From: Carpediemonas membranifera BICM
Taxonomy: Eukaryota; Protista; Fornicata
Reading direction: 5' to 3'
Assembly (NCBI GenBank): GCA_019828565.1
Contig: JAHDYR010000067.1
Coordinates: 841,864-905,863 of the forward strand
DNA: 64,000 nucleotides
The notes under the pieces are model-generated. The model did not search any database, was not told the origin of the DNA, and saw only the letters and a list, made by a program, of their open reading frames with translations. The first letter of the stretch is position 1. Every line of letters begins with the position of its first letter. Made by a program: the position numbers and the translations under genes. Below are positions 23,941 through 43,911 of this stretch, one piece after another.

Positions 23941-23961
23941 TAGATAGACAGCGACGTAGAA

Positions 23962-25107
23962 ATGACGAGGCCGGACAGTATCTGTGGTAGCCAAGCCCCG
24001 GCAACCCCAGCGTCTCAGAGGATGAACAGAGTCAGTGCCAACAAGAGAACCACAAGAACCCCCAAGCGGCAGGTGCTGGGGGGCGAGGCATCAGGCAAGC
24101 GCACTCAGCTTCCTATAGACAGTGTGAACAGAGACAAGGAGGTGCCGCCGAGGATTAGCCTGGAAGACATCGTCCAAGAGCATATCAGAGATCAGCAGGA
24201 GGCCAGAAGGATGGCAGGCGAAGGGAGAAGCCAGCACGAGACCAGCAGCCTGCCCTTATCAGAGACCCAGCCGAACCAGAGACTTGTCCTAGCAGCCATT
24301 GACTTTGAGTGCAGCTACACGGGCAGCTCAAGACAAGGCACATCAGCGATCCCGGTCGAAGGAGGCATTGTCATGATAGATGTGGATAGCAGTGAAGTGG
24401 TCGGCCACGGCCACGGTATGTTCTACCAGGACATGCCGCTCAACAGAGTCGAGCAGTCAAGGCACACATCATGGGCTGTCACAGGCCTACCACCAGCGAC
24501 CTTCGTGGACATAGCGACAGGAAGACCCCCCAGAGACCTAGAGCAGCACGTCCACACCTTCCAGGCGTGGGGCGACCGTCTAGCGACGGAGCTCAAAGCG
24601 TATGAGAGAAGAGAAGGCTGCAGAGTCCACCTGTTCGCCAAGGGAAAGCACATGGAGATGTTCCTCCTCACAGACGCAGCGAACGGCTTAGCCGCAGAGA
24701 GCAGAGACTACTTCGCACAGAGACTAGTGGACGAAAACGAGCTGCCAACGCTGCTGGTCAGGGCTAGACCCGACCTCGAACAGAGATTCAGAGTCAATTA
24801 CAACAACGCGCAGAGCATGGAGTGGCTAGACCTGTGGACCAGCCGGTGGCAGTCACGGGAAGCACCCAAGAGAGTATGCCCCTACCACAGCCACACGGCG
24901 GGGTGCTATCACTGCGCACTGGCGGACAGCACACTGTTCGCAATCAGAGTTCTAGCACTATTCAGAGGCACCAACGGCATCGGTGAGTTAGAGGACGCCC
25001 TCAGACTGCTGCAGCCAGCCATTGAGGAAGAGGTCAGAGCAGCCAGAGAAAGCAGTGACATCAAGAAAGAAAGAAAGAAATTTAACGTATCCTGTACACC
25101 TGTGTAA
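23962..25107 (+). CDS. MAEL: Maelstrom-domain (DEDDh/ECHC) nuclease protein
   Basis: IDFE, PVEGG, TGLPP, LFAKG, VCPYH and YHCALAD give the MAEL E-C-H-C zinc motif plus the D-E...H-D residues retained in protist MAELs. Purine/AGA-rich coding like the neighbouring LINEs. Confidence 0.75.
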   Translation: MTRPDSICGSQAPATPASQRMNRVSANKRTTRTPKRQVLGGEASGKRTQLPIDSVNRDKEVPPRISLEDIVQEHIRDQQEARRMAGEGRSQHETSSLPLSETQPNQRLVLAAIDFECSYTGSSRQGTSAIPVEGGIVMIDVDSSEVVGHGHGMFYQDMPLNRVEQSRHTSWAVTGLPPATFVDIATGRPPRDLEQHVHTFQAWGDRLATELKAYERREGCRVHLFAKGKHMEMFLLTDAANGLAAESRDYFAQRLVDENELPTLLVRARPDLEQRFRVNYNNAQSMEWLDLWTSRWQSREAPKRVCPYHSHTAGCYHCALADSTLFAIRVLALFRGTNGIGELEDALRLLQPAIEEEVRAARESSDIKKERKKFNVSCTPV

Positions 25108-26084
25108 ATCAGGGAATTACCAGTTTGCACCACCCCATGTCCCCGGGAACGCCTTAGCGTGTTGACTTCCCTTCGTGAGCGAGCCTGATACTACGTTGGG
25201 GGCGTTAGCACCATCACCGTCAGGGTCCAGCTGGTAAGGCTGGGTAGTCCCTTGCATGTTGACCTATCAACTGGCTGGCCCGATACCCCCAAAGTCGGGA
25301 TAACCCAGGTCTTACTCTTGGGGGTCCTTCGGGCCCCCGTTCTGCCTGGCACCCGCAAGGCCTTGCCCTGCACACCCGCCACCGGGGCCTTCTGCTCGGT
25401 TTCCCCCTACAGGGCTCCTCTCAGGGATATGTTCTCCATACCATTCGACCCAGTTTGCAATTTTTCAGGCACCCGCCGAAGCGGTTTCGGGCTTGGCGTT
25501 TGCCGTATCACGCAATTGGGCCAGTTATGAAACCCACCGATCATCGCTGGGTAGCTATATGATTCACGGCTGCGTTCGGGCTCTTCCACACTTTCCGTTC
25601 CGGCATGGATCCCCTCCTCAAGGATTTGTTCCCTATTGGGCTTCTTCCTAGCTTCCGGCTGGTTCCAAGTTTTGGGTGCCGGGCCGTTCGGCGCAGCTCT
25701 GATTTGGTCCAGGTGCCGCCCAGGTGGTATTGTTGCCTTATGGTTACCCTCCTGTTTGGCTGCTGCGCCCCGATACCTCGCACGTACGTGTATACATGTG
25801 CATACGTGCCCCGCCCTATGGCTCTGGGTTATTTCTTATACGTGTGAAGAGTGTGCCGGTTCTGCCGGCTGAATGTTGTCTACGTTCCCAGTATGGGTGA
25901 GCGTTTGTGTGTTAGCGAGATTAGTGTTCGGGGTTGAGTCCCCCTTCCGCGGCTGGGTGCTACCGGGATACGTGGGGCTTGCGTCCCCCGCTGATCCCAG
26001 GAGCGCTCCGCTTCGGTTGAGGCGGGGGGTTGGGTCCCAGTTTGACCCTGGTCCCAGAGGTCATAGGATTCTGGGATGGTGTAC

Positions 26085-29000
26085 TTACCCGTCTTTCCGG
26101 AGGTTCAGAAGGGCACGTCTGCCGTTCTGCAGTCCCTCTCTGACGGTATGGTCCTCGCTGCGGAGGAGCCAGAGCATTTCCAGGATTGCCCTTGAGTTGT
26201 ACCACTCCGCCTCCTGCCCTTGCCTTAGGGCGTGGTACTGTGTGCGTAGATGCGCCTCCGCCAGGATGTCATTCCATCCTTCTGGGCGTTCTACCGCCTT
26301 GCATTGGCAGATGATGTGGCTTTGTGTTCCCAGGGGCTGGTTGTATGCCCATTCTGAGAGGATTTTGGTGGTTTCCGCCGCGGTTCTGGTGACAGTGTAC
26401 AGGCGAGTAATGGTGTCACCTTCTGAGTCCAGGGTACATAGGGGGCAACACCGCTTGATCCTGCTCAGGAGGGCCTGGGGCTGGCCGATCGCGCTCCCAA
26501 GTATGGCTCTGCTTCTGCCACTGTTGCTGGGGGAGGGGAGTGTGTTGGATGCAGTCATGATTACTCTCTTGACTTCCCGTCTGGTTATCATCTCACCCTT
26601 GATCATTCCTGGTTTCTTGGGTCTCTTCCCTTGCTGCATGCTGAGGATGACTTCCGGGGCTAGTACTGTTGCCACCCCTTTGGCCGTTCGGCTCCCGGTG
26701 TGCAGTAGTTCTTCTGCTGTGAGGGTCCAGCCTCCCCTCTTTGCTCTTTCCCTGGCGGACATCTCCTCCTGTGTGCCCTGGAGGACGCTCCGTCGCCATT
26801 GGTAGAGGCGATGTAAGACCGATCCTCTCTCCGCTGTCGCCCAGTCCAGATTCCCTAGGGGGGTCGGACGGTCCGGGTCGTGCGCAGACTCATAGAGCCT
26901 CACCGCTCTCTGCCCCATATCTGCCTCCCAGCACATCCATCCCATTAGTACACGGGCGGCTCCTCCTCCCCCTGGTCCTGTGCCTGCCATTAGGCCGCGC
27001 CAGTTGTTCCAGATGGCTCTTCCCCTGGCGCTTGGCCCCAGATCTCGATCCCGAACTCGATCTTGGGCCAGAGGAAGGTTCTGAGGATGGATTCCGAGGT
27101 GGCGGCCGGGGTGGATCCTTTGGTCCACCCTGCTCTCCTGCCAGGGCTAGGTATTTCCGGGATTGTGACGTCTTCATTTTGATGCATGCTGCCAACGGAT
27201 TCTTCCCGCTGGCTAGCCAGAGTCCCAGATACCTTGCTGAGTCTGACGCCAGTGTGGGAGTTCCTTGGATGCTGACCGCTGCAGTTACGTCGGTACTTAT
27301 CACCACACTTTTGCCTGGGCTGGTCTGGAGTCCATGGGCTTCAATTACCCTGACCACTGCGTCTGTGCCTTCTTCGGCGAGCTGCGGGGTCTCGGCTGAG
27401 ATGCTTGTATCATCTACAAACATTGCAATGAGGCAGTTTTTGGGCCTATCGTCCGTTGGAGGGAGGCAGGGGTCCGGGATCTCTCTATGCCGGAGGTACA
27501 GTGCCGCCTGGCTTAGCCAGTTAGCTGTGAAGAGGATGAACAGAGTGGGGGCCACCACACATCCTTGCTTGACCCCCCATGTTTGTTCTGGACCATGTGC
27601 TTGCCCCTCGTACCGAGATGTACGTTTCTGTAAGTGTATTTCGGATGGCCCTCGTCAGTCTTGGGTGTACCCCCCATGAGCGTCAACTTGTTCACCAGCA
27701 GGTCCCTTGGGACCGTATCATATGCTTTTGCTATGTCAAGTAGGACGCTGGTACGGTTTCCGGACTGGTGGAGTTGGGCTAGGAGGGCTATGTGATCCAC
27801 TACAGTTTTCCCTTTCATGAACCCAACTTGCTCTCTGGGGATGAACTTCTCCACCGTCGGCCTGAGGCGCCATTTCAGTATCCTCCCGTAGGCTCTGTAT
27901 AGGAGGGGGGGTGAGGGAGATCGGTCTGTACGAGCTGGGCGTGAGCTTGTCCTTCCCAACCTTGTGGATAGGCGACACCGCTGCATACTTCCATGTGGTT
28001 GGCATGGTCCCGCTGTCGTATACTTTCGCGAGCAGGACTGTGATTGCCTCGTACGCTGACTCGGGGAGGTCCCTCAGACAATCTCCAATAATCCCGTCCA
28101 GGGCCTCCGGCCGAGGACTTCCTTATGGACTTGACCGCCGCTGTCACTTCTTCAAGCGATGGCGGATGGTCCTCCATGTCCGTTTCCGGCTCGGTTTCCC
28201 AGGTGGGTTCCCAGGTGGGTTCCTTCCCGGAGCTTACCTTCGCGTACTGCTCCTGGAGGGAGTCTGCAATCTCCCTCTGCCTTGCTAGAATCTTGTTTCC
28301 AGCCTTCAGCATCACCGGGAGACCGGCGTGCTGCTTCTCGTTCCAGAAGCGGAACACTTGGTTTGCGAGGATCCTTTTTGTCGTTTTGTACCCATCACGG
28401 GATCCAACCTCAACCTGCTCATTCCAGTCATGTTGGAAGGTCCTCCATGATCTGCTCAGTGCTCCGTTGAGGGACTTTTTGATATCTTTGGCGGCGGTTT
28501 TGCTCCAGGTGGAGGCTTTGGCCAGCCGTTCCCATACCTCACTCGGGATACGTTCCTGGTTTTCTACAGCGAATGGGTGCCTTCTGGAGGTAGCAAACCC
28601 GGTGGACAACCATTTCCTTATGAGAGTCTCCATCTCGTCCACTGGTATTTTGCTGTCTAGTGGTGGCCACTCTTCTAGCTTGGGCCCTGTTCTCCTGGGT
28701 TTGACCAGCCACGTATCGATCCGTGGGATTTCCAGTCTCTTTGATATCTCTGGTTTCCCTGTCGGGTTGCTATCCCAGGTGAGCTCTATGGCTTTGTGTG
28801 CCGACCCCCAGTGCCCGATTGTGGTCTTGTCTATTACCCTAACAACCGGGTTTTGGATACCCCCTGTTACCGCTGCATAGTCTATTGTGGACGTTCGGGA
28901 GTTAGTCCCGTACGTCGGTGCAGTTGGTGCTATTGGGGTGAGGTTCCATCGCTGGAGGGTCATCGCAGTTGCTTGCCTGAGTTTCCCTGGCCTCCTGTTC

Positions 29001-29458
29001 CAGTCCCCGATGATGATGATGTCACACCCCTCATAGTTCGCGACGGTTTGCTCTAGCATCCGGTCGAACTCCTCAATCTCGGGTCGTGCACATCCACTAT
29101 CGGGAGCGTAGATATTGATGACTGCCGTGGCCCTCGATGCTTTGAGGATGCTTACTTGGATTCGTGGGTTCGTCCCGTCGGACACGCCTACGTCCCATTC
29201 CGCTTTGGAGTGCGGGCTAATCAGTGTGGCCAGTCCCTTTGTGGGTCGCTTGCGCGTTGCCTCTAATGGCTTGACCTCTCCTGCACAGGCGTACTGGAGA
29301 TCTACCCAGCAAGGGATGGTGGTATTACCGTACCGCTTGGTTTCCTGGAGGAGGATCGCATCAGTCCTTATCCTCTTGCGGATGGATAAAGCTATGGATC
29401 CGCTGTAATCGTTTGCGCCCGCTAGGTGCCCTTCGCTGTTTAGCGATACTATTCTCAT
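26085..29458 (-). pseudogene. LINE ORF2 (AP endonuclease, reverse transcriptase, C-terminal CCHC), several frameshifts
   Basis: SLNSEG, LLQET, INIYAP, IIGDWN, TIDY, SAH (APE); SYRPISL, EQVGF, LDIAKAYDTV, LAPTLF, MFVDD, RYLGL (RT); CPLC..SHIICQC. Confidence 0.9.
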
Positions 29459-29639
29459 TCAGGTTGTTCTGACATAAACTGCGGGAGTTACCCTGCGCGC
29501 ACTAATCTGCTCTTTGTAGACATTCCCTTTTTGGGCGTACCTTTTGGTGGGTTGCTGAGGCCTCTAACCGAGCAGTCGTTTCCTTTTTGGGCAGGCTTGT
29601 GCCTGTATTCCCTTAGTTCCCGGCCTAGGGCATACCATT

Positions 29640-29875
29640 CCCTTTCACAGTCGGGGCCTCACGATGCTTGTCGGCATTGCTGCCGGTCTCCGCTTAGCTT
29701 CCTTCCTCGCCGCATGGCAGAACCATTACCTAACGAGCTTAGGTGGGAGCGACAGTGGTTGTTGCCCCTCCCAAGGCTGGAGTTACAGCCTGCCGGACAG
29801 GCAGGGCTCTTTTTACCTTTTGGTAACCCTGCCCCCCGGCCCCTGTGGGGCACAGGGGTTTGTTGAAAAAAAGAA
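29640..29875 (-). promoter_or_regulatory. Structured inter-ORF RNA element of LINE A
   Basis: U-rich tract, then hairpins cccctgtg/cacagggg, ggcagggt/gccctgcc, aggctg/cagcct, tgggag..ccactg..ctccca, then cctaag. The same order occurs at 37626-37830. Confidence 0.55.
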
Positions 29876-30034
29876 TGTGTTGCATTTTTGCTCCCGCCGG
29901 AATGGTTCGCCGGTGTCCATTTGGACTTTAAGGCCCTACTAGTCACAGCCTGGCCATACATGCTGGTTCATATATATACTTTTAGCTCAGACTTATATCA
30001 CACTACCCTCTGCACCTCTTACTTATGATTGTTT

Positions 30035-33000
30035 CTACTCTCCTTCCTTCTCCTCGTCTCTCTTCCTTCTCAGGTCAGACCTGAAGTTATCCATCTTGGC
30101 TGCTAGGGTGAAGCTGAGGGCTTCGTTGGTTGCCGAGAGTCGGGCCGCGCGGCTGAGTAAGTCCTCGTTCTCTTCGGTTAGAGACGAGCACTTCTCCGTT
30201 GTCTTCCTGAGGTCCTTCCGCATCTCGTCCAACGCAGCTTGGGCTGCTCTCCGGGCTTCCCGTTCTTCCTCCAGCTCCTGGCTTTTGGCCTTGAGCTCGT
30301 TGATGGTTCTGGCTGCAGCTTCTTCCAGCTGTTGTCTGACCTCTGCTTCTCGCCGGGCCATGGCTTGGTCCAGCAGGGCCGCTATGCCTCTGCCCAGGTC
30401 GGTGTCCTCCTGTCGTGCTCTTTTTGGGCTGCAGGTCCTCTTGGTCCACCTGTCTGACCTGGCGGGTCTTGGCTGATGGGTTGGGGGGTATGGGGGGCAC
30501 AGCTCTTAGTTGGAGGGGGCCCGGGCTCTGTTCGCTCTGTCCTGCTACTTTGCGGTTGTTCAGTGACAATTTGCCCGCGTGGAGGGCCATATAGGCCCCC
30601 TATGCCGCCATTCGGCAGGTAGACCTCCGTCCTCCCTGTGAAGCATCTTGGCGAGTTCAGTAGCCCTTCGTCTCACCTTTGTTCGAAGCGCCTGCTTCCT
30701 CTCGGTCCTCAGTCTGTTCTTGGCGTTAGTGCTGGCGCCTTCCGGGAAAAACACAGTTCAGCGTGTCCCATGGCTTCCCCCCTTTTGGGTGTTCCACGCC
30801 TGAGCCCGCCAGGGCGAGTTTGCCTATCCAGGAGGCGCTCCTCAAGGTGCCCACTCGCCTCTTCCCTCTTTCTGCTGGTTCATCCGTGATACCCCAGTCC
30901 CGGGGGAGGAACGAGGGGAGGAAGTTGATGGAGCCTGTCTCCGGGTCGACACACATGTTGGCCAGGAGTTCTCGATCGTCGGCTGGGACCTCCGTGAAGT
31001 AGTTGAAGATCTTCTTCCTGGCTTCTCTGCCCATGTGGCCTCCAGCTATGTCGAATTTGTGGACGGGCATCAAAGACGCCGCTTGGGATAGGGTCATCGT
31101 TTTTGGTGTCGCTGACGTCTAGAGTAAGCATCTTTTCCGCGTCTATTTCCGTGGGCTCCCCCTCAGGTTCGCCCAAGGGAAACCGTCTTGGACAGCGCGG
31201 CGGCGCCCGTTCCACTCCGAGTGGATTTCCAGGAGGATGGGTCGCGCTGGTTCGCCTACTCTCGCGAGCGATTCTGGGTTTCCGATGATCACGGCTGTTC
31301 CTTCCAGGGCTCTGGTGATACCCTTTCCGGAGCTGAAATCGTTTTCCTCCCAGTTGGTCATGATAATCTGGCCCCGTTTGGGGTTCTTGGTGCCAAAGAG
31401 GTTGACTTGTTGGGACAATGGGGTTAGGCGACCGGCCGCCACGGTGCCGGGGCCGTGTCTGGCGTTGACTTTGGTCGCCAGGTCCTTGTATTCATCATGG
31501 TACGGCGACTCCCTGCCCATGAGCATGCTTCCTAGGGCAGTGAGGTGGGCTTCTACCTGCCCCCAGTCCCAGCCTGGGTTGTCTCTCATCCAGAACGCTG
31601 TTGCTAGTCTGGCGTAGAATATGGAGACATCTGCTAGGGCGCAGTGGCAGTGGTGGGGTGCGTGCTTGTGATAGGGGCACACCACTTTTGCCTCCGGGCG
31701 CTGTTGGTACCTTCTGGTCCAGGTCCGGCCCAGTTCGGACTGGGGTCGGGAGGGGAGGCCGGTGAGGCTCTTCTCCCCACTATTGGGGGTAGAACCAGGT
31801 CAGCGTGTCGAGGATGTTGGGGAAGATCGTGTTGAGGTCAGTTTCATCCATGAGGCGTAAGCTTAGCCAGGTGCGGAGGTTCCCGTCTGGGACGAACTTC
31901 TCACTGGTCAGGATGCTTCTCTCAGCCTCGACTCCCTTAGCCACGATGTGGACGTGGGTCTTCTGTGGCCCCGAGTCGTCTTCCAGTCTCTTCAGCTCTG
32001 TAGCCATCTCGGTGCACCATCGCTTGGCGTGGGGAAGTCTGCTTCGTATCCCTTGGGGGCTTTGCCCGTGGTGTCGTCGACAAACGTAGCTGGTGGGCAG
32101 CCATGGATGTAGTGCGTGGCCCACAGACATTGGTCCAGGGCATCCACTGTGATGTCTTCCCCAAGCATCCCGTGCATGTAGTAGAGGATTTGCTCGTTAG
32201 CTGGGTCGAAAATCAGTGCCGCCCCTTCGCAAATGATGGCCTCGTCTCCCTCGGTTGGATCTGGCTCTTCCTTCCTCAAAGTCCACCATAGCGATCAACT
32301 GCCTGGTGGTGTTGGCTCGTTGGGTGATATTGGAACGAGGCGGGCTAGCTCCCATGCTGGGCCCGCATGTGCCCTTGTTTGGCGTGGTGGGTGTGTCATC
32401 AGGGCCGGAAGTCCTGCTGCCGCTCGGGCCCAGGGGGGTTTCTTCTTCGTTAGTACCCAGGGCTCCATGAGATGCCCCGTCCCGTACGGGCTCTATAACT
32501 TGGGTCTGCCCCGTTGTGAGCCAGTAGTTAGTGATGTTGCGCGTCAGAAAGGAGGCAGACACCAGTTCGCGGGCAATCCTCGCGGGTGGGGGCCAGAGAC
32601 GCCTGGTCTTATCCCATGCCGACCAGAGTTCGGGGAAGCCGGGGACTGACCACCGTTGGATGAGGTCTCTGACCTCCTCCCTCAGGTCTGCCTCTGCTGC
32701 CGAAGGCTCTTCTTCCAGGGGTGGGAGTGGGAAGACTGGCCTCATCACACCCTCGGTTCTGCTGTAGATGAGGATCTCCTCGACGGGGCCCTGGGTCCAG
32801 ATCTGGATGGGCGTGCCGTCTGGTCTGCGGGAAACCTCCCTCCGGGGGGTGAGGGGCGTGGTAGCCTTGCCCTTTGGCTAGTTCCCGGCCTAGGTCGGCC
32901 CAGAGCTTCTTGTTTTCGCGTCCTAGTGAGGGGGAGCCCTCTGGCTGCAGCTCCCGCGGAGATGGCGTGTCCGGCGGCATGGAGGAGCCACATTGCAGCC

Positions 33001-33890
33001 TCCATCCCGTACTTGGTCTGGATGCCGTTGCCTGAGATCGAAGAGTGTCCTGCAGCTTGCAGCGATGTTGCCACGAGCTCTAGGAGGAGCGTCCTTGCGA
33101 CCTTTCCCGTTCGGGCAGTGAAGTCCGTTGCGTCATCTCTGGTGAAGACCATGGCAACGTCCCTTGTGGGAATAGCCGCATCTGCTGAGGCTCTGATGCA
33201 GTCCCATTCGTCCGGTGTGGCCAGTTGCTTGCCCAGTGGCGTTAACGACTCCTTGATCCCATTTGGGGTGGTGTTTGCGCAATCCAAGGCGTCTGGGACG
33301 CTTTGGGAGCTGTTCGAGGTCATTGTGTGGCGTGGTCTCGAAAAGTCCCGGTTATGGATTCGGCCGAGATCAAGGCCCTCCTCCACGGGGAGAAGTGATG
33401 GGGTGTGTTGCTCACTAGCTGGTGCCGTCTGGCTCGTCCGGTGGGGATGTGCTACGTACTTGGAGTAGTCCGCCTGGACTCTGGGGTAGAACACAAATTT
33501 GGGGGACCCTGGGCGAAGCCGGCTTAGTGTCTCCGCCTGCTCTAGGTCCAGCCGGTTCCCTTCAATGAATAGCCAGTATGGCTGTTGGGCGGCTTTTGTG
33601 TACCGTCTCAGGAGGGGAAGTGATGCAAACAGCTTCTTGGCCCGGCTTTTCCGGAGCTCCCCTGGGCCTTCCTTTGCTGTAAAGCTTCCCTGTTCTGGGT
33701 CTACAATCTTGTCGTATCCTATCGCGTTGCCGAGCTGGATAATGGACGTATTTGCTTTTTTCCCTTCTGGTTTTCCTGAGATCCCTTCTGGGTGTAGCCT
33801 TAAGGGCGAATAAGCCATAAATCATGCTTTCTTCCCTATCTGGCATGTCCCTGTTGGGATATTCCCCTGTTTCCATTTGGAGTGGCAAAA
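30035..33890 (-). pseudogene. LINE A ORF1, frameshifted; contains a Maelstrom domain (about 31560-32300) and a C-terminal coiled coil
   Basis: Successive frames give IAMVDFE, IICEGAAL, HGCPPATFVD, HIVAKG and VCPYHKHAPHHCHCALAD, all homologous to 23962-25107. Coiled coil at 30035-30361. Confidence 0.7.
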
Positions 33891-36390
33891 GGCGGGAAGT
33901 GCACTTTTGCCAGCTTCTTGGAGGGGCTTGAGGAGGTCTGGTGGAGGTTCCAAGGGGCGCCAGCCAGCGATGTCCTGGTCTTGTATGGCTCCTTTCCCTT
34001 CCTCAGGGCGGATGGTTCAGGGGGCGAGGTATGCGAGGTTTGTTGCGGACCTTGTTTCCACACAAAACATGTCTGGCGAAAACCCAAAAGGGAACCTTAT
34101 TGCAGGGACAGGGAGCATCGCCCCACACGGGGCTGCTGTCCCTTATTCCCCCATGCGTCCGTTCCATCTCTCCTTCCACCTTCACGCCTCCTCCTGGCCA
34201 TTCGGCCGGCGCCTCCGCTGCCCAGCGGTCCCCAGAGGGGGAGGTGCATTACCAGGGGTTATGCACTCCGATCCCTATCGAGTCCTTGGCCCGAGTACGG
34301 CCTGGACTCCGATTTCGGGGGCGCCGCCTCTTTCCCCGGGAAGCAGGGCCCTCTTCGCACTCCGACGGGGGATCCCATATTCCCCTCCGGGCCCCAGGGT
34401 AGTCCCTTGCCTTGTGGCGGCAGGGGCTTCACCGCTCCTTCTCGGGAGTCCCCGACTCCTGGCCCGGCGACTCCTCGGGGTTGGGAGGCGCATTTCCTGC
34501 GGACCATAGCTGACGATTTTGCCCAGGTGGACGTCCTGGCCAGCCGGTGGCGGGAGCGTGCCGCTGCCTTTTCCTACCTGGCTCAGAATTACCGTGACGA
34601 GGACCTGAGTCCCCACGAGTCTAAGTCGGCTCGGGGTTTCGACGCTGAGCTGAGGGGCCAAATGCGGGTCTATAAGCGCCTTCGTGCTCGCATAGACGCC
34701 CGGCTGCACCAGCTGGTTGCCATTCACGCCCCTCGTCCTGTATCTTGTGGTCGCAGCCCGGTTGTTTCCTTCCTGGGTCGCGTCACTCCCAAGAGGTTGT
34801 GAGTCCTGGTAAACACCGTGATGGTTTATGCCTTTTGGCTTCGGCTGGGCGTTTCTTGTGGGGCTGTGGACGGGGCCCTCAGCGCTCCCGGTCTGTTGTC
34901 CGGTATGGCTGGTGTACTGGGGGCCTGTTGTGGTGGCCCTGTTGCCTATGCCGGCGGCGGGCGGCGATCCCGGCTCTCGTGGCGATGACGTCCACAAGCC
35001 CGGTCTTGGGCGGCATGAGAGCACGGGCGCCGGAGTAGTGTGGCCCAGTGGCCTCCCAGTGAGAGCCTATTGGCCGCCGGTCCCGGTGCTCTCGGGTTAC
35101 TTTGCCATATGGCCCCAGTTAAGTTGTCTGAGGCAATCGTGTCGCAGTGCCTCTGGGGCCTACTGCGGGTACCGGTTACGGTAGGGGTTTCAATCATAAA
35201 GGTGGCGCAGTACGCTTGTTCGCGTTGATTTCCCTTGTGGGTTTGTGCGAGGAGCGTTTAGTTGCGTCTGGTCCCCTTGTGGGTCCCAGGAGCATGGGCG
35301 GTAGGTTTTGTTTGTTGTTAGAGTACTGTGTATTCTGTCAACGCTTTCCTACCGAGGCTAACTTATTCCCTTTTGGGTGGTTTTTGCCTCTTGTGCATTT
35401 TTGGGCACACGAGGACGATCATCTGTTGCTCGACATAGCTTGGCGCACGGCGAGGTATACAGGGCAGGGGAGTGGGCTCCAGGTGAGGTGCGCACCTCAC
35501 CTGGAGCAGCCAGTTGTCCTCTGCCGGCCCGCTCTGGCGCTAACCTGCTTCGCAACGGGCGATCTCCTCCGGGGAGCAATTTGCTTCCCCAATGTGCCCT
35601 ATGGCTAGTGGGTTAGGAGAATACTTCCCATTTCTGCTCTCGTGCCCCAGAGCAGACGAACTCTTGGTCCTGAAATTACCATTTGGTGGATGCTGGCGCC
35701 GCGGGGCACCGTCGCTCGCTTCGAGCTCGAATAGCTTTCAATGAGATCCGATAAATCCCGATTGCCAGCTTTTGGCCTTTTTCCGGTTGGTTTCGTCAAC
35801 TTCCCATACCGGACATTTCGCGTCTGAGAAAGCAGTGACATCATAGCAGGGCTGGGGTTCCAGCCGAGGCACACAGCGTTCCAGGAGTTTGGCCCCCACC
35901 CAGCGTTCAGAGAGATCAGAGACGGGCACCAGGGCAACAGGTTCCTTGTAGTGCCAGACAGAGAACACAGGTTCGGCATTGGCTTCGGATTTGCAGAGGT
36001 AGCGATGGGGATGAAGGGCCTGCTCCTATCCCCTGACGCCTTCACTGACAGAGACAACAGAGTCACTAGGAACCCTATCTGGACACTGGAAGAGGAGCTA
36101 GACAACCCAGAGCAACTCAGAGCGGTCCAGGGCCGAGCCGGCCTTGGAGCGCACAACGAAGAGAACATGGTCACACTGTCACAGCTCGTCAACTGGTGGC
36201 CCAGCAGAGAGCGCATCGCCCGGCAAGAGACCTGGGGATGCGAAGAGCTAGCAGAGGCACTCAGAGAGTTTGAAGGGCGCATAGCCAATGTCAAAGCCCC
36301 CCGAACGCCAGAGCCTCCATCAGAGTCGCATTCATCCCCAGAGACTGGGGACTGATCAGAACCAGAGACGCGGGGTCTATCCTGAAGCGC

Positions 36391-37578
36391 ATGCGCTGGG
36401 AAGGCCGACGCATGGTCACCACAGTGATCCCGGAAGAGGCCAGAGTCAGAATGGGGGGCATCCCACCCAGCGGATACAAACCCGACGTGGACGGCAAGGA
36501 CGAGATGCCCTTCAGGGTCACGTACAGAGACACTCACCTCCAGACGGCAGTCGGCGAAGTCGAGCACCAAGTGGTAGGCAGGAACTTCAGAGACATCCTG
36601 GACCCTGCAACCCGGGTGGACAGACGCCGCGAGGACGAGCGCCGTGACCACAAAGAGATCAGGCGCCCGGACATCAGAGATGAGAGACACCACGACAGAG
36701 AGGTGGGTTACCAAGTTGACAGAGAGGCCAGACGGTCGGTCGACCAGGAGGTCAGGCGCCCTACTGGCAGAGAGATCGGACATCCCACCCACAGAGAAGC
36801 CATACACCTGGCCGACAGAGAGGCCAGACGTCCGGCTGACTATGAGGTCAGACGCCCCATCGCCAGAGAAGCTGACCAACCCACCGAAAGAGACATCAGA
36901 CACCCTGACGACAGAGAGGCTGGGCGCCTCATCGACAGAGAAATCAGACGTCCTGAAATCTATGAACGCGACACGGAGCTCGAACGTCTGGAAGCCAGGG
37001 CCAACAGAGCAGAACAGGGCGGTCTCCGGATCAGACCCGACTTCGAAGAGGCAGAGAGGCGCCAGCGGGAGAGAAACGAGTGGTTTAGAGAACATCTTGG
37101 AACAGCCAGAGACAACCGCAGAGGCAACCACTCCTCAGCAGCCGGCAAGCGAGGCAGCCAAGGCAGAGACGACCTATCCGAGTCAGGAAAGAGGAGCAGA
37201 CACAGTGACGACACCGCTGGGACGGTAAGAAGCAGACTACCGGACCAGCAGGACGCCGAGAAACAGAGGCTCCTACTTCAACTGGCAGAGGCACAGCGAG
37301 AAATCTCAGCCCTCAAGGCCGCCCGGCAGAGACCCGCAGACCTGGCAGGCACTGAACCCGACCCCCTTGTCAGACCACCGATTGAGATGGTCAAGAACAG
37401 AGACGCCGCGGTAGTGCCCCGTCGCAGGAACAAGAGCAGGAGAACCAGGACCACCAGACAGATGGACCCCATGGAGATGACACAGTTCATGTCCTTCATG
37501 GCCAACATGCAAGGTGGTCAGGCCCGCGACCCTGAACCGTATGATGATGCCAGTGAAAGTGAGGTCTCGGAGGAGTAA
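36391..37578 (+). CDS. LINE B ORF1-like protein with about 13 tandem 8-aa repeats and coiled coils
   Basis: Repeats REVGYQVD/REARRSVD/QEVRRPTG/REIGHPTH... at about 36650-36960. Lies upstream of the APE ORF. Confidence 0.6.
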   Translation: MRWEGRRMVTTVIPEEARVRMGGIPPSGYKPDVDGKDEMPFRVTYRDTHLQTAVGEVEHQVVGRNFRDILDPATRVDRRREDERRDHKEIRRPDIRDERHHDREVGYQVDREARRSVDQEVRRPTGREIGHPTHREAIHLADREARRPADYEVRRPIAREADQPTERDIRHPDDREAGRLIDREIRRPEIYERDTELERLEARANRAEQGGLRIRPDFEEAERRQRERNEWFREHLGTARDNRRGNHSSAAGKRGSQGRDDLSESGKRSRHSDDTAGTVRSRLPDQQDAEKQRLLLQLAEAQREISALKAARQRPADLAGTEPDPLVRPPIEMVKNRDAAVVPRRRNKSRRTRTTRQMDPMEMTQFMSFMANMQGGQARDPEPYDDASESEVSEE

Positions 37579-37625
37579 GTGGATCAGAGATAAAGCAGTA
37601 TTCTTTCAGAAACTAGTGTATCAGA

Positions 37626-37830
37626 CTTTCTTTCTTTATATATCCCTGGCTCCCACCCAGGGCCTGGCATTAGCCCACGGGCACTGCCAGTAGGTTGCAG
37701 GCGGCAGCCAAAGGGGGGGTCACGCCACTGCGCCCCCTCCTAAGTATCCATGCCCGAGGGCGAATCGGTCACCAAGAAGCACGGAGGCTGGCCCGCCAAG
37801 GGTTACCAAGACCGGCATCGAGGCCCCTTG
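37626..37830 (+). promoter_or_regulatory. Structured inter-ORF RNA element of LINE B (second copy at about 51885-52092)
   Basis: Hairpins ccctgg/ccaggg, ctggca/tgccag, ggttgc/gcagcc, gggg..ccactg..cccc, then cctaag. Differences between the two copies keep base pairing. Confidence 0.55.
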
Positions 37831-39648
37831 ACGGGACAGAGACACAGTGAACCCTTAGCCCCTGCAGAAATTCTCAGAATTCGCAGGATAAGGATCAGAG
37901 CATAGTACAACATGGAAACGTTCAAGATCTTAAGCCTGAACACTCAGGGGCACATAGGACGAGGAAAGGACTTCACGGCATCAATAGCAACAGCAATTCA
38001 AACCAAACTCAGAGACATTGAAGCGGTTTGTATACAAGAGACATGGAGAACAGCAAACACAAGAGTCCACAGCTTCATAGACTTCCAGTACGCTTTAGCA
38101 GGCAGAGAAACAGAGGAAACACTAGCAACAACGAACGAAAAGCGGAAAAGAGAGACCAGGTGCCAGCATCGCGTGAACAGACAACTGGGAATCACAGGTG
38201 ACGACCCCCTACACCCAAGTGGCACGGGACCAGAGAAGGCATCGGCACAATCGTAAGCCCGCATGCCAGAGCAACATGGGATGTCGGCATCACTGACAGC
38301 CTGTCAGGAAGAGTGCAGGCGAGTATTATGAGGACGAGCAGAGACATCATGGTAATCACAGTGTATGCACCCACTTCAGATAAAGGGAAGACAGTGAAAG
38401 ATCAGTTCAGAGACAACATCCAAGAGATACTGGACATGAAAGGGGACATGGAAGCAATCATCATTGGGGACTGGAACATGGCCCCAGGGCCGGCACACGG
38501 AACCACCAGGTGGAAGGACGTTATGGACAAACACAAACTCAGAGCAATCATACCAGAGAGGGGCACATTATCCAGTGGCAACACCACACCGGACTTCGCA
38601 ATGGTCTCAGAGGGAATCAGGAAAGCAGAGATTCAAGTGGTCAGCTCGACAGTGCTGGGAGTATGGGGGTCGGCCCACAAAGGGGTCAAGCTTGCCTGGG
38701 AAGAACCCCGATACAGAGCCAACAGAGACGATGACAGTGGCCTGGAAATGCCAGGAGTGCACACATGGAATATGAAAGAGAGGGAGGGCCACACAACAAT
38801 CAAGGAGCTAGACAGAAACGGATCGATAGATCAGTGGGAGGAGACAATCAGAGCCTGCCTGGGGGAACCAGCCGGGGAGAAGAGAGCCAAACCACGAGAG
38901 CAGATAGTACAAGACAGCGCATGGGCCGACCTCCATGAAACAGAATGGTCAGAAGCAGGCAACAAGGTGAGGACGAGACTAATGAACAGCGAACTGAAGA
39001 AGTGCTGGGACAAACGCAGAGAAGAGTGGATAGCCGACCTCAGCAAGAGCACAAGAGAGGGATACAAAGCATCGAGATCAATGGTAGAGGCTGCAGTCAG
39101 AAGATGGTGGTGCGACAACCAGTACAAAGGGATGCCTGGCAGCCTGCTCAAGGACGGAATGATCACCACGGACAAGGCCACGATCAGTGAAATCCTGCTT
39201 AAGCAGTATGCGAAGGTAAGTAGAGGCAGAGAACCAGAGTGGAAGGAGTGGCCTGGCATAGGAGGGGACGAATTCTCCAAGGAGGAAGTGAGAGCAGCCA
39301 TCAGTAAGATTAAGAGAGACACAGCCCCGGGCCCAGAGAACACAACAGGGACCATGCTAAGAGAACTCAATGAGCGAGGACTCAAGGAGCTTACCAGATT
39401 TATGAACAGGGTATATAGAGAAGGGAAGATCCCAGAGACGTGGAAATACGCAACAGTGTCAGCTATCCACAAGACCGGAAAACTCAGAGTTAAGCCAGAG
39501 TCGTATAGACCCATCTCGCTCACCCCGTTGCTGTACAGAGTATACGGTCGGCTGTTAAAGAAGAGACTGGAGAAGGCCACCAAAAGGTTCATACCCAGAG
39601 AACAGGCAGGATTCCAACCTGAAAGGGACGTAGTGCAGCAGATCCAGT

Positions 39649-42172
39649 GGAAGAAACGTGGAGGACGGCGAATACGAGGGTACACAACTTCATAGACTTC
39701 GACTACGCAATGGCAGGGAAGGAAACAGAGGAGGAGCTTGCTATGGACAACGAGAGGAGGAAGAAAGAAGCCCAAAGCCAGCGCCGAATAGATGCCCAGC
39801 TGGGCATAGCAGGGAGCAGTAGCCGGACGCCCAGGACGAGGGGTACTAGAGAAGGAGTGGGCACAATCATCAACCCAAGAGCAAGAGGGAGCTGGGACGT
39901 AGGCATCACAGATAGCTTATCAGGGAGGATACAGGTGAGCATACTCAGAACCCATAGGGACATCCTGGTGATCAACGTGTATGGCCCACCGGTCGGCCAC
40001 GGAAGGGAGGAGAAGGACGAGTTCAGGGACGGAATAAGGAGCATTCTGGAGATGAAAGGAGAGATGGAAACAATCATCATAGGGGACTGGAACCTCGACC
40101 CCAAAAGGATAGCCACAATGGCAAGATGGAAGGACCTGATCAGGGACTATAAGCTGGGAGCAGTGATCCCCATGGAAGGTACCCTCACCAAGGGAACTAC
40201 CACTCCGGACTTCGCGCTGGTATCATCAGGGATCAGAGGAGCAAGGATAGAAGTACTGGATGCTAGTCGACTCGGAGTCTGGGGGTCAGCCCACAACATG
40301 ATAAGACTGGAATGGAGGGAACAACGGATCCAAACGGACTACAAAGAGAGAGGAAGTCCTAGACATACCGGGCGTCAGAGTGTGGAACATGAGGAAGAAG
40401 GCTGAACGCACATCAGTCAGAAGACTGCACCGTTTTAAGAGCCTGGATGTGTGGGAGGAGGATATCAGGAAGGATATGGGCGAGCCGTCAGGTCACCCAG
40501 GCAGTGGATACAGGGAAGAGGTCATCAAAGAAAAGGTGTGGTCGGAGCTCCGGCACACACCATGGACAGAAGAGGGAAACAAGACCAGAAGTGAGATCAT
40601 GAAGTGTGAGCTACAGGCCTTCTGGGGAAAACGCAGGGAAGAGTGGATCCAGGACCTCAGCCGGAGCGCGAAGGAAGGATACAAAGCATCCAGGTCCATG
40701 GTGGAAGCAGCGGTAAGAAGATGGTGGTGTGAAAACCAGTTCAAGGGCATGCCAGAGAGCATACTGAAGGACGGGAAGATTACCACCAACAAGGAAGAAA
40801 TAGGTAAGATCCTCCTACAACAGTATGCAGGAGTGAGCAGGGGCAGGGAACCGGAGTGGAAGGATAGAGGCAATGGAAAGAGGGAGGACGAATTTAAGGA
40901 GAGAGAAATACGAGAAGCGATCAGAAGGATAAAGAGGGACACTGCACCGGGACCGGACCACACTACAGGGGACATGCTCAGGGACACAGATGACCAGGGG
41001 ATCGCTCAGATAACTAGGCTCATGAACAGGGTATACAGGGAGGGCAAGATCCCGACAACATGGAAGTATGCTACAGTCTCGGCCATCCACAAGACAGGGA
41101 AGCCCAGAGTGAAGCCGGAGTCGTACAGACCCATCTCGCTAACACCACTACTGTATAGGGTGTATGGTAGGCTCCTGAAGAGAAGATTAGAAGCAGCCAC
41201 ATGGCACCTCATCCCAAGAGAGCAAGCAGGGTTCCAATCGGATAAGGACGTAATACAACAGATACAATACATAGTGCAGAGACACCAGGAAGGGGGGGAC
41301 ACGACCTCAGTGTTCCTAGACATAGAGAAGGCATACGACACAGTGCCAAGAGACACCCTGATGGACAAACTCCAGGGAATGGGAGTGGAGGCCCACCTTA
41401 TCAGAGCAATCCAGAGCACACTACAAGAGACATGGATATCAGTGAAAGGGGCTAAGTCATGGGAAAGGACAAACAGGGGGGTGAAGCAAGGGTGCGTACT
41501 AGCCCCGACCCTGTTTGTTCTCTTCATGGCAAACTGGCCCCACCTGGTCAGGAAAAAGCACATGAGCGAGCCCTATGATATCAGAGAACCACCAGTGGAA
41601 ACAACAAGTACCAGAGACCCACTCCCGGCAGTGTTAACCATGTTTGTGGATGACACTGCAGTCACGGGAGACACACCGGTACAGAGCCAGATCATAGCAA
41701 ACCTGGTCATAGCGATCATCAGAGAACACGAAATGGGCGTCAACGAGCAGAAGAACGTCATGATCAGTGTCGACAGAGCAGCCACGGTCAGAATAGGCGG
41801 CGTCACGCTACTACCAGCGGAAGAGGCGAGGTACCTTGGACTATGGTTAGCCAGTGGCAGTGACCCCCTCAGAGCATGTATCGGGAAGAAGAAAGAACAG
41901 AGCAAGAGGTACCAGAACCTAGTGAGATGGGCGGGGTGGACTAGAGCAGACATGCCAGCGACAGCCAGCAGACTCCTCCTAGAAATCTACATTTGGCCGA
42001 GGATCACTTTTGGAATTGAAGTGTGGGGAAACGAGACAGGGGCCAGGAAGATCTGGAATGACTGGCAAGGTATCATGGCAGGCACTGGACCCGGAGGGGG
42101 CGCCGCCATGAGGCTGATGAACGGTTGGGTCGACCTCCAAGCCCACATGGAGATGCTTGCAGTGAAAACATA
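39649..42172 (+). mobile_element. Non-LTR retrotransposon C ORF2 (APE-RT), 5'-truncated and split by the TIR element; resumes at 51716
   Basis: ETWRTAN..INVYGP..IIGDWN; LDIEKAYDTV, GVKQGCVLAPTLF, MFVDD, RYLGL. Confidence 0.9.
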
Positions 42173-42242
42173 CTGTCAATTCCTTGACTTCAAGTCAAGT
42201 TTTTGTGACTTAAAGTCAAGGCCAAAACTTGACTTTAAGTCA
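42173..42242 (+). repeat. Left TIR (CTGTC tip and three TGACTTnAAGTCA palindromes)
   Basis: Read directly; reverse complement of 51646-51715. Confidence 0.95.
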
Positions 42243-43911
42243 AGACGTTTGAATTAATCAGAGGAACCAGGCTCTGTCAGTAAATAAGAATGGTATGGCT
42301 GGGTAGCAGTACTAGTTCTCTATTCACTGCATTGATGGCTAACTGTGGGCTAAGCTGTGACCTGAGTATGGGTGACTTCTTCTTGACGACGAGAGCCATT
42401 TTTTTCAAGTTCGACCACTTTGGCTCTGTCCCCTTCGCAGTTTTTTGCAGGATCTGATCTACACCAGTAGTGCTTGTGATCCAACAAAAATCTGCGAAGG
42501 GGACAGAACAGATCTCGAGATTTTTAGCAAAAGACTCGGGCCGAGTCGAGAGGCGTTATTGATGAGCGCACAGCTCAGGGAATTTTTCTACGCTGCAACT
42601 AAAAACCAAGAGGCCGAGTAAACACAAGTATTACTACACGATGATGCCCAGACCGTCGTGTAAGGAGAACATTCTTGGGCGGTCAACGCGAAGAAAAAGT
42701 TAAAGTTATTGGAATTAAAAAGACGGCAATGTACTCGCCCTTGGCTGAAACCTCAGGCATAATGGTTTCAGGTGTGAACTCTTCCAATTGGGGGAGTTAT
42801 TGTTATTGTTCAGTTTAAGGTCACGCCGCCTGCATGAAAAAAAAATGGTAATGACGGAAGCAATGTCGGATATATCCAGAAATGACTGTGATAGAGCTCA
42901 TAGCAAGACAGCATTCGAGATATTTGCCCATCTGAGCATGCTTTCGCTCATTCTAGATGGCATAAGCCTCTTTTCCCACAACTAATCAATATCAAGTCGG
43001 CTTTTACTCAGTATCGCTCGCTCAGACATCTGAAACGTCCCCATTGGCAATATAACACTGCTGGAACAGTGAAGTGGCGAGCATAGAGTTCTATTGATGA
43101 CGAAAGGTTGCGACCGGCAAGCGCCTGGTTCATACGGCCATTTGGGGCGGTGCGAGAGCCAATCTCGTTAATGAAAGGTAAGATGATGCGCGCATGAGTG
43201 TTTGTAGGGTCACTAACGACCTTAATGACGAGTTAGGACGTGTGTGGCAGGGCCGTGCGCTGCCGGAATACACAAAGGGCAGATTCGCCCCGTTGATTCC
43301 AGAAGCTCGCCGCTCTTCCACGCACGATAGTCAATACAGGGATAGATACACATCTGGACCTCTTTTATACAGCCAACCAGGCTCCGCATAAACTGCGCAT
43401 TTCAGATGACGCCCGATGAAGAAAAACACACGAGCGACGCCGGTATCGCCGGCGAAACGTATAGCATTAACGATTGAAGGGATAGAATTGGAGCTAGACG
43501 TTGTTTATGGGATTCAACGAGCGCACTTCATTGATTCTCGCATTGATGGTGAATTAGAGCAGATGAAGCGCTGCACGGCAAGGATCAAGACATTTTGTTC
43601 ATACTACATAGCAAATTACAACGAGTTTTCGATGTGAATAGATCTGTAAATAGAGAGAAACCTGTAGCAGCCGATAAACACTGTCAGTCAACAGCCCAAC
43701 CGAAGACACGCCAAAACACAAGCACAAGTCAGTTTTACTCAGTTTGATTCCCGCAATTGCAGAGTAGTTCTCATGGCAGTCTTTGCAGAGATTGCAGAGA
43801 TGATGGGGTGGGAGACACTCGATATTTGCATTTGTAGATGAGTTGGAGATAAATGTAGTCACTGACGCTAATCACCTTTTTGCAATGACACGGATGACGG
43901 AGTTCGTCATT

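Follow-up and report, generated by a model that had tools for sequence, protein, structure and literature searches.

The stretch of DNA analysed here (the window) comprises 64,000 nt of contig JAHDYR010000067.1 of Carpediemonas membranifera, and all positions are given in its coordinates unless another sequence is named. One joint explanation probably accounts for the locus described here, i.e., two nested LINEs whose first proteins contain a Maelstrom (MAEL)-type DEDDh exonuclease that is a working part of the element machinery, with a 381-aa open reading frame (ORF) left behind as a stump. Maelstrom is a transposon-silencing factor in animals, which is why a LINE-borne domain of this type matters. 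The locus 23944–39648 is a family-A LINE (+ strand) split by a family-C LINE (− strand), both APE-type non-LTR elements, with the following features:

23944–25062, + strand: family-A LINE, piece 1, 5′-truncated, internal ORF1 part with the MAEL-type domain (99.5% identity to L039 1878–2996)
23962–25107, + strand: chimeric 381-aa ORF, starting at an internal ORF1 Met and ending inside the family-C element
24244–24996, + strand: MAEL-type DEDDh exonuclease domain, family-A copy, 251 aa (alignments A1/A2, AF2 model, fold searches, hhalign to P0016)
25046–25062, no strand: target-site duplication (17 bp) from the family-C insertion, left copy
25063–35825, − strand: family-C LINE, full-length, 10,763 bp, nested in the family-A ORF1 (99.0% full-length identity to the copy on contig C65)
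27875–29458, − strand: APE endonuclease ORF of the family-C LINE, 527 aa (Pfam Exo_endo_phos and Exo_endo_phos_2)
31566–32345, − strand: MAEL-type domain, family-C copy, approximate limits, two reading frames
35826–35842, no strand: target-site duplication (17 bp), right copy
35826–39648, + strand: family-A LINE, piece 2, with the C-terminal part of ORF1, the ORF1–ORF2 spacer, APE and the start of RT (98.0% identity to C56 99979–103810)
39649–42257, + strand: fragment of another related LINE, partial APE then RT

Piece 1 of the family-A LINE corresponds to residues ~307–679 of the 849-aa ORF1 found in intact copies (L039:960–3506), and the window from 35826 onward aligns to L039 2980–5159, i.e., to the same copy as piece 1. 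The duplicated 17-mer occurs once in the uninterrupted L039 (2980–2996) and twice in the window. Within piece 2, Pfam APE and RVT_1 both match in 38313–39695. The family-C element is ordered as an upstream ORF, ORF1 with the MAEL-type domain, APE, RT (seen in the contig C65 copy) and a 3′ tail, (TTCT)4 at 25063–25079. The locus thus displays the hallmarks of LINEs: APE followed by RT, many copies, 5′ truncation (family A, at 23944), and a target-site duplication with a simple-repeat tail (family C). The closest solved structure to the RT is human L1 ORF2p, and no RNase H was detectable in ORF2. The RT of the 39649–42257 fragment shares 88% identity with the RT of an element on contig C39 that also carries the MAEL-type domain downstream of which its own RT lies.

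A first, sequence-only reading of this DNA had described two diverged MAEL-like domains sharing a series of motifs, one of them lying in a LINE ORF1 upstream of APE-RT. Both descriptions hold: the two domains are homologous, every listed motif was located on both copies, and the − strand copy precedes the APE ORF (29458–27875) and RT. The motif positions are:

24298–24309 IDFE, 24355–24366 VEGG, 24484–24510 GLPPATFVD: family-A copy, + strand
24637–24645 AKG, 24877–24888 CPYH, 24910–24927 HCALAD: family-A copy, + strand
32283–32275 DFE, 32231–32220 CEGA, 32102–32076 GCPPATFVD: family-C copy, − strand
31941–31933 AKG, 31679–31668 CPYH, 31646–31629 HCALAD: family-C copy, − strand

The two copies are ~31% identical. 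The family-C copy in the window is spread over two frames because of three 1-bp homopolymer indels (32250, 32034 and 31789); in the family-C copy on contig C65, the same domain lies inside one 991-aa open frame.

The domain spans ~230 aa and belongs to the DEDDh superfamily, Maelstrom type. The Pfam Maelstrom HMM (PF13017), by which the sequence-only reading had proposed to check this assignment, gave no match to the LINE-borne domains, even at E 10, and none in a six-frame search of the genome, a search in which the controls were incapable of giving a signal. Profiles A1 and A2 likewise found no sequence match among the metazoan MAEL chains in the PDB. However, a bridging protein, an exact zinc-ligand register and, with near-ties, the fold favour the assignment. 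An exhaustive profile search of 1.84 billion representative proteins gave 16 matches, including P0016 of Rhizamoeba saxonica (E 5.6e-4), which itself matches Pfam Maelstrom at 5.7e-19 (69 bits, cut-off 22) and whose top three PDB sequence matches are all Maelstrom. Aligned with hhalign, the LINE-only profile A1 matched P0016 with 98% probability (E 1.8e-13, 184 columns). P0016, the single protein on which the bridge to MAEL depends, is transcriptome-derived and possibly transposon-encoded itself.

The AF2 model of the family-A domain (pLDDT 84.7, pTM 0.83) shows the topology β1–3/αA/β4/αB/β5/αC, i.e., the order of an RNase H-like DEDDh exonuclease, and its leading fold matches are all DEDDh exonucleases or MAEL. 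An unbiased search of 48,161 PDB representatives placed Bombyx Maelstrom (9nhc_F) at rank 1 (Z 13.1 over 189 aligned residues). Drosophila MAEL scored Z 12.3 (195 aa), and 3′hExo, ERI2, RNase T and the exonuclease domain of DinG came within 1 Z unit of MAEL; with an earlier, poorer model, MAEL was absent from the top 50 entries by Z. These near-ties, with VIA Z-scores for MAEL and other DEDDh enzymes differing by <1 unit, would fit a capture by LINEs of a generic DEDDh (DnaQ-H/RNase T-like) exonuclease in which the C-x2-H-x8-C motif arose independently of Maelstrom. The absence of a PF13017 match, the position of 3′hExo and TREX1 at the head of the Foldseek list, and the protein-atlas neighbours (Rv2179c-like and DEDDh_C clusters), which score like the MAEL cluster, point the same way. 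However, the alignment to a Pfam-verified MAEL protein covers the whole domain, beyond the Cys/His motif, the zinc-ligand register is the same as in Bombyx MAEL, down to the β2 Glu and to the Cys that precedes the last catalytic Asp by 4 residues, and MAEL chains take rank 1 with the longest structural alignments (189–197 residues), making a generic origin unlikely. The identification of the LINE domain as a Maelstrom-type DEDDh nuclease domain, and as a regular, conserved part of the non-LTR elements here, is supported.

The residues of the active site were placed in the numbering of the family-A copy. ExoI is D20/E22 and ExoIII is H223-x4-D228, both invariant, whereas at ExoII, which the A-K-G-x-x-M-E register locates to the beginning of the helix following β4, an invariant Glu (E138) takes the place of Asp, a Glu that P0016 shares. 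The putative zinc ligands are E39 (β2, predicted strand 36–46) and C212-x2-H215-x8-C224. Alignment A2 brings together one MAEL protein, six LINE lineages of Carpediemonas and four elements from another assembly, and in it D20, E22, E39, E138, D163, C212, H215, H223, C224 and D228 are invariant. In Bombyx MAEL, Zn is bound via E137 (β2), C290, H293 and C302, and position 306 corresponds to the last DEDD residue (PMC4408791). Judged by sequence register, the ECHC arrangement of the LINE domain (E39, C212, H215, C224, then D228) is identical, the Asp again lying 4 residues after the last Cys. The active site appears to be intact.

A catalytically dead domain, serving like animal Maelstrom as an RNA-binding module and forming only the nucleic-acid-binding part of ORF1p, would be in keeping with the classical role of LINE ORF1 proteins as RNA-binding chaperones, with the Glu at ExoII, and with Bombyx MAEL, which binds single-stranded RNA and is nuclease-inactive (PMC4408791). 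This reading is slightly less probable than a generic origin. Each of the five catalytic positions holds an acidic residue or His and is invariant over lineages 23–31% identical, whereas animal MAEL has lost its own, and the amoebal MAEL in which both sets of motifs are retained shows robust activity (PMC4408791).

The domain occurs at no fewer than 120 places in the 24-Mb genome. A first genome search with the 381-aa query gave 112 matches, and a fourth LINE group adds at least 20 places, in which open frames of up to 1748 aa cover the domain and APE together. The domain is carried by at least four deeply diverged LINE groups and by LINEs of a second assembly, from another organism, so that it is not the one-off insertion that the sequence-only reading had named as a refutation of its proposal. 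In all groups examined, the domain is followed by APE and RT, and in one group domain and APE share a single open frame. The proposed genome-wide count of domains near APE-RT showed at least 41 of 99 domain places to be followed, on the same strand, by a listed LINE RT (at a distance of 1.2–4.2 kb in 34 cases), a lower bound because 70 of 486 RT candidates were scored; by a rough estimate, the chance expectation for such pairings is well under one. Constraint was also found: between-group pN is 0.32–0.50 vs. a saturated pS of 0.59–0.83, indicating that the domain is under purifying selection, and the whole motif chain lies in one frame in 33 of 41 sampled copies. The ORF1 proteins bearing the domain are 850–1250 aa long, and the domain is the sole ORF1 part common to all LINE groups in the genome. 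Outside LINEs, the genome yielded no MAEL-like sequence, and transposons are therefore its only carriers there.

The 381-aa ORF, which the sequence-only reading had taken as intact and without host context, is instead an ORF1 stump left by 5′ truncation and the nested LINE insertion. It starts at a Met inside ORF1 and reads 45 bases into the family-C element, which provides its last 14 codons and stop. Because the L039 homology continues on both sides of the insertion (99.5% match, resuming at 35826), the ORF is an internal fragment of the 849-aa LINE ORF1, and the view of it as a free-standing gene, being one of a split piece, is wrong. That it might be a domesticated host gene of LINE origin, as its unbroken ATG-to-stop frame of 381 codons with the whole domain inside might suggest, can practically be dismissed, since its DNA is 99.5% identical to the interior of multi-copy LINE ORF1s, the homology ends exactly at a nested LINE with a 17-bp duplication and restarts 10.76 kb downstream, the C-terminal 14 residues and stop belong to the inserted element, and the genome has no single-copy divergent homologue.

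Since the domain is the only shared part of ORF1, is under purifying selection and is fused in frame to APE in one group, we regard it as a working component of the LINEs rather than a passenger gene. It would most likely be a Mg/Mn-dependent 3′–5′ exoribonuclease, carried in the LINE ribonucleoprotein and acting on RNA 3′ ends. The absence of a detectable RNase H in ORF2 leads us to propose that it could trim or remove element RNA around target-primed reverse transcription. Over its final 150 nt, family C shows no more structure than shuffled sequence does (z 0.45), which lends no support to trimming back to a 3′ stem-loop. Alternatively, the domain could destroy small or double-stranded RNAs that guide Argonaute/Piwi silencing; the genome has two Piwi-domain genes. 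Two larger ideas, separately or together, are improbable, although somewhat less so than a generic origin of the domain: that the MAEL nuclease was originally a retrotransposon protein, with LINE ORF1 exonucleases as the source of domesticated cellular MAEL (possibly also of the arenavirus nucleoprotein exonuclease), and that the active enzyme would be a LINE counter-defence against the small RNAs or dsRNAs guiding the host's two Piwi-domain proteins.

Among known systems, the protist MAEL exoribonucleases (Entamoeba histolytica EHI_192630; Zhang et al. 2008, PMC2628886; Chen et al. 2015, PMC4408791) likewise combine a DEDDh fold with DEDD-type catalytic residues and ECHC, have the same C-x2-H-x8-C spacing and the same distance of 4 residues from the last Cys to the final Asp. 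Entamoeba MAEL, which has the two sets of motifs, shows Mg/Mn-dependent exoribonuclease activity (PMC4408791), and the Pfam-verified amoebozoan P0016 aligns across the entire LINE domain. Whereas protist MAEL is a stand-alone cellular protein, the domain here is internal to a LINE ORF1 or fused to APE-RT, occurs in at least 120 copies, is too diverged for the Pfam model and has Glu at ExoII. Metazoan Maelstrom of the piRNA pathway (PDB 5AF0, 4YBG, 9NHC) is the top structural match, with other DEDDh enzymes within 1 Z unit, and has the same zinc-ligand register. However, it is a single-copy host gene with an HMG box that has lost its catalytic residues and silences transposons, whereas the LINE domain retains its active-site residues and belongs to the transposon.

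Three further groups of selfish elements offer partial parallels. First, the C-terminal exonuclease of arenavirus nucleoproteins (Lassa, LCMV) is an active DEDDh enzyme with an ECHC-type zinc site, which destroys dsRNA that triggers host immunity (PMC7968707, PMC4408791); its Z of 9.7–9.8 is below that of MAEL, its sequence identity of 17–19% is the highest among the listed fold matches, and its fusion partner is a viral nucleocapsid domain, whereas the LINE domain resides in a retrotransposon. Second, the bdelloid Juno/Vesta LTR and Athena/Terminon elements (Rodriguez et al. 2017, PMC5408684) are a precedent for a DEDD-superfamily 3′–5′ exonuclease as a retroelement accessory ORF, and some of these enzymes were noted to contain a Cys-His-Cys motif (PMC5408684). 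However, they are RNase D-like (DEDDy) and are encoded by an ORF3 of their own, which follows pol in LTR and Penelope-like elements of an animal, whereas the DEDDh/MAEL-type domain occupies a gag-like ORF1 position in APE-type LINEs of a metamonad protist. Third, the esterase-type (SGNH/GDSL) ORF1 of CR1, L2 and RTEX LINEs also places an enzyme in the ORF1 position, replacing the RRM/zinc-knuckle chaperone, with another fold and chemistry (lipid/ester hydrolase vs. nuclease). Among host enzymes, 3′hExo/ERI1 and ERI2 are top Foldseek matches, tied with MAEL (Z 12.3–12.7); these DEDDh trimmers of small-RNA and histone-mRNA 3′ ends, which also degrade siRNAs, are host genes with no ECHC zinc site and no detectable sequence relationship to the LINE domain.

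LINE ORF1 proteins are regarded as RNA chaperones, esterases being, to our knowledge, the one enzymatic exception, and we know of Maelstrom solely as a host repressor of transposons. We found no published report of a Maelstrom-type exonuclease in LINEs. Here, an apparently active, ancestral-type Maelstrom nuclease sits inside a transposon as its most conserved ORF1 module. This raises testable questions, i.e., what a 3′–5′ exonuclease adds to target-primed reverse transcription when the element lacks RNase H, whether transposons, like viruses, encode suppressors of small-RNA silencing, and where the MAEL domain originated. A counter-defence role, if true, would be the mirror image of the part that Maelstrom plays in animals.

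The 381-codon ORF at 23962–25107 is present with every motif that the sequence-only reading had listed; the proposal that it is an intact gene was not borne out, as it is an internal piece of a LINE ORF1 whose end is read from a nested insertion. DNA comparison with other genomic copies showed that window positions 23944–25062 match positions 1878–2996 of L039, a full copy of the same plus-strand LINE family (family A) on contig C56, at 99.5% identity, and that the same copy continues at 35826–39648, with 98% identity over the whole stretch and 99.4% over its first 2.2 kb. The 17 bases at L039 2980–2996 are found on both sides of the interruption in the window. Because the L039 match is split around an inserted element with a 17-bp duplication, the 381-aa ORF is the stump of a LINE ORF1. 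In intact copies, the stretch matching 23944–25062 forms the interior of an 849-aa ORF1. The ATG of the 381-aa ORF is an internal Met in the ORF1 of a 5′-truncated family-A LINE, and its last 14 codons and stop are supplied by the inserted element, which belongs to a second LINE family (family C). The features involved are as follows.

25063–35825, minus strand: family-C LINE of 10,763 bp, matched along its whole length by a copy on contig C65 (99.0% identity)
25046–25062 and 35826–35842: 17-bp repeat, the target-site duplication of the 25063–35825 element
35826–39648: family-A remainder following the insertion (ORF1 C-terminus, APE and the start of RT)
after 39648: fragment of another related LINE

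The order across 38313–42257 is APE, RT start, a second partial APE and a full RT, and indicates that a third related LINE, with an RT 88% identical to one on contig C39, either lies against family A or breaks into it near 39648. The region is a nested pile of retroelements, with Ty3/chromoviruses at about 17.9–23.9 kb and several LINEs.

The sequence-only reading had also described two diverged homologous domains sharing a set of motifs, and both are seen in the window by motif position and by tblastn. The second copy lies in family C on the minus strand (~32345–31566); in a tblastn search against the window it was ~31% identical to that of the 381-aa ORF, and it is split across two frames. 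In the intact C65 copy, a 463-aa upstream frame precedes a 991-aa ORF1 frame containing the domain, and APE and RT come next; this copy was used in place of the frameshifted window copy, whose domain had been searched as separate pieces. The window copy retains an intact APE ORF (29458–27875), but its ORF1 is broken by 1-bp indels. Between window 25063–35825 and C65:230641–241379, which are 99% identical, there are 30 indels, mostly single bases in runs of 4–6. These may be consensus errors of long-read assembly rather than real decay, as may many of the "frameshifts" in repeats of this assembly. The 3′ end of family C (25063–25079) is (TTCT)4, set directly against the target-site duplication without poly(A).

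Carpediemonas membranifera, the species under which proteins identical to the genome's ORFs are annotated, is a free-living metamonad. The window is C67:841864–905863 of its assembly, which comprises 24.2 Mb in 69 contigs. Searching this assembly with the 381-aa query returned 112 matches, which fall into identity groups of ~99%, 75–93%, 44–51% and 32–33%, the majority within long open frames, the longest being 1172 aa. A fourth LINE group, reached via the annotated protein KAG9391364.1 and described from coordinates only, adds 20 or more further places, at several of which the domain and APE are both covered by one open frame, at most 1748 aa long. This group has a single-ORF architecture, not ORF1 plus ORF2. 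Its places, all outside the window, are:

C9:344448–346781: fourth-group LINE
C6:526635–528953: fourth-group LINE
C39:15753–18611: fourth-group LINE
about 20 others in the same assembly

A listed LINE RT lies downstream on the same strand at 41 of the 99 distinct domain places (34 of these at 1.2–4.2 kb), a lower bound since 70 of the 486 RT candidates were scored; chance alone, estimated roughly, would give well below one pairing of this kind. RT matches with no upstream domain would be the expected product of 5′ truncation. The domain is the only ORF1 segment common to all groups, between which nonsynonymous differences amount to 0.32–0.50 per site and synonymous differences to 0.59–0.83, the latter saturated. 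The whole motif chain stands in one frame in 33 of 41 sampled copies. These data show the domain to be integral to the first LINE protein and under selection, with conserved catalytic and zinc-ligand residues.

Beside the domain, family-A ORF1 holds two further conserved blocks, L039:960–1949 and L039:2907–3506. The N-terminal block (~330 aa) is common to families A, B and B3. The other of the two (~190 aa, C-terminal; LVVPD...RFGxGFGF...GMKGxLL...WWP) lies at ~35826–36350 in the window and is also conserved in elements of a second assembly, GCA_002919055.1. Neither block gave a Pfam match or a usable protein-atlas neighbour, and ORF1 showed no CCHC knuckles. Separately, the Carpediemonas protein KAG9395705.1, annotated "Splicing factor U2AF", has the C-terminal portion of the LINE domain at its N-terminus; it is probably a gene model running through a LINE fragment.

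As for distribution beyond this genome, 1.84 billion representative proteins were searched exhaustively by profile, with 16 matches only, namely Carpediemonas "hypothetical proteins", ORFs from GCA_002919055.1 and one amoebozoan protein, the MAEL protein of Rhizamoeba saxonica. The GCA_002919055.1 ORFs share no more than 35% identity with anything in the Carpediemonas assembly and are therefore from another organism, in which the layout is the same, i.e., a 1250-aa ORF1 followed by an APE–RT ORF2. Two of its contigs carry LINEs with the ORF1 domain (GC 52–61%, Chromodomain and DDE_3 fragments nearby):

PPCM01002078.1: second-organism LINE with ORF1 domain
PPCM01001449.1: second-organism LINE with ORF1 domain

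The view that the domain is a regular LINE component, rather than a one-off insertion, is thus upheld by the copies in several Carpediemonas groups and by this shared layout.

The Pfam Maelstrom profile, proposed earlier as a check, matches none of the LINE copies: zero Maelstrom matches came from scans that covered both window copies, the intact ORF1s and every alignment member. A PF13017 search of the Carpediemonas assembly likewise gave no match, and the control genomes were not able to give one either. PDB sequences searched with a LINE-only domain profile and with a more diverse domain alignment gave nothing meaningful, and animal MAEL was not reached; word-indexed searches for more MAEL, using the Rhizamoeba protein and the more diverse alignment, yielded nothing beyond the query or a fragment from Carpediemonas. 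Pfam RNase_T (PF00929), intended as a host DEDDh control for hhalign, had zero matches in a six-frame search of the assembly, while the control genomes did respond.

Three independent lines of evidence point to a MAEL identity. First, the Rhizamoeba protein, the weakest significant match of the exhaustive search, matches Pfam Maelstrom at 5.7e-19 (69 bits, cut-off 22), and Maelstrom chains take the top three places among its PDB sequence matches. In hhalign, the LINE-only profile aligned to it with 98% probability (E 1.8e-13), the 184 aligned columns running from strand one through the final catalytic motif. Second, the hallmark of the MAEL family, as defined in the Bombyx MAEL structure paper, is a zinc held by E137 (beta2), C290, H293 and C302, with residue 306 as the last DEDD position (PMC4408791), and the invariant E39, C212, H215, C224 and D228 of the more diverse alignment (family-A copy numbering) reproduce this register exactly, E39 being on the predicted second strand. 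Third, an AF2 model built from the more diverse alignment (pLDDT 84.7, pTM 0.83) has the canonical DEDDh topology, and an unbiased structural alignment against 48,161 PDB representatives placed Bombyx Maelstrom at the top (Z 13.1, rmsd 3.6, 189 residues), with Drosophila MAEL scoring Z 12.3 (195 residues) and 5AF0 Z 11.9 (197 residues). Within one Z unit of Bombyx Maelstrom are 3′hExo (12.7), the DinG exonuclease domain (12.6), and ERI2 and RNase T (both 12.3), and the first places in Foldseek were 3′hExo and TREX1. The modelled fold alone shows a DEDDh exonuclease; the MAEL-type assignment comes from the link in sequence and from the zinc-site register.

The catalytic positions D20-x-E22, E138 and H223-x4-D228 are invariant, and ExoII has Glu (E138) instead of Asp, as it does in the Rhizamoeba protein. 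Unlike in animal MAEL, all catalytic positions are occupied in the LINE domain, which is in the "both motif sets" state of protist MAEL (PMC2628886), the active Entamoeba enzyme and Lassa NP (PMC4408791).

The earlier interpretation is supported in part, namely that LINEs carry a MAEL-type nuclease. When the Carpediemonas assembly was searched with the Rhizamoeba protein, only LINE copies were found and no cellular MAEL gene apart from them was seen; therefore, either direction of transfer, capture by LINEs or LINEs as the source, may apply.

The domain would act as an active Mg/Mn-dependent 3′–5′ exoribonuclease inside the LINE RNP, and three roles are compatible with the data. It may process 3′ ends, of RNA or DNA, in target-primed reverse transcription, the elements ending in a simple repeat and not in poly(A); it may remove template RNA, no RNase H domain having been detected in ORF2; or it may degrade silencing RNAs, as ERI-1 and arenavirus NP do, the genome having two Piwi-domain genes (C7:87108–88037 and C65:23790–24737). 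A more specific version, in which trimming stops at a terminal stem-loop, is not supported: the final 150 nt of family C fold no more stably than shuffled sequence (z 0.45).

No account of a MAEL or DEDDh domain in the ORF1 of a LINE turned up in full-text literature searches; Carpediemonas is named in a 2026 preprint about adenine methyltransferases in retrotransposons, but the MAEL-type domain is not. DEDDy-type exonuclease ORFs occur in bdelloid LTR and Athena retroelements, where they are stated to have been previously unreported in retrotransposons, and esterase ORF1s occur in CR1, L2 and RTEX LINEs (PMC5408684). The present finding brings together two known kinds, a LINE with an enzymatic ORF1 and a MAEL-type DEDDh nuclease.
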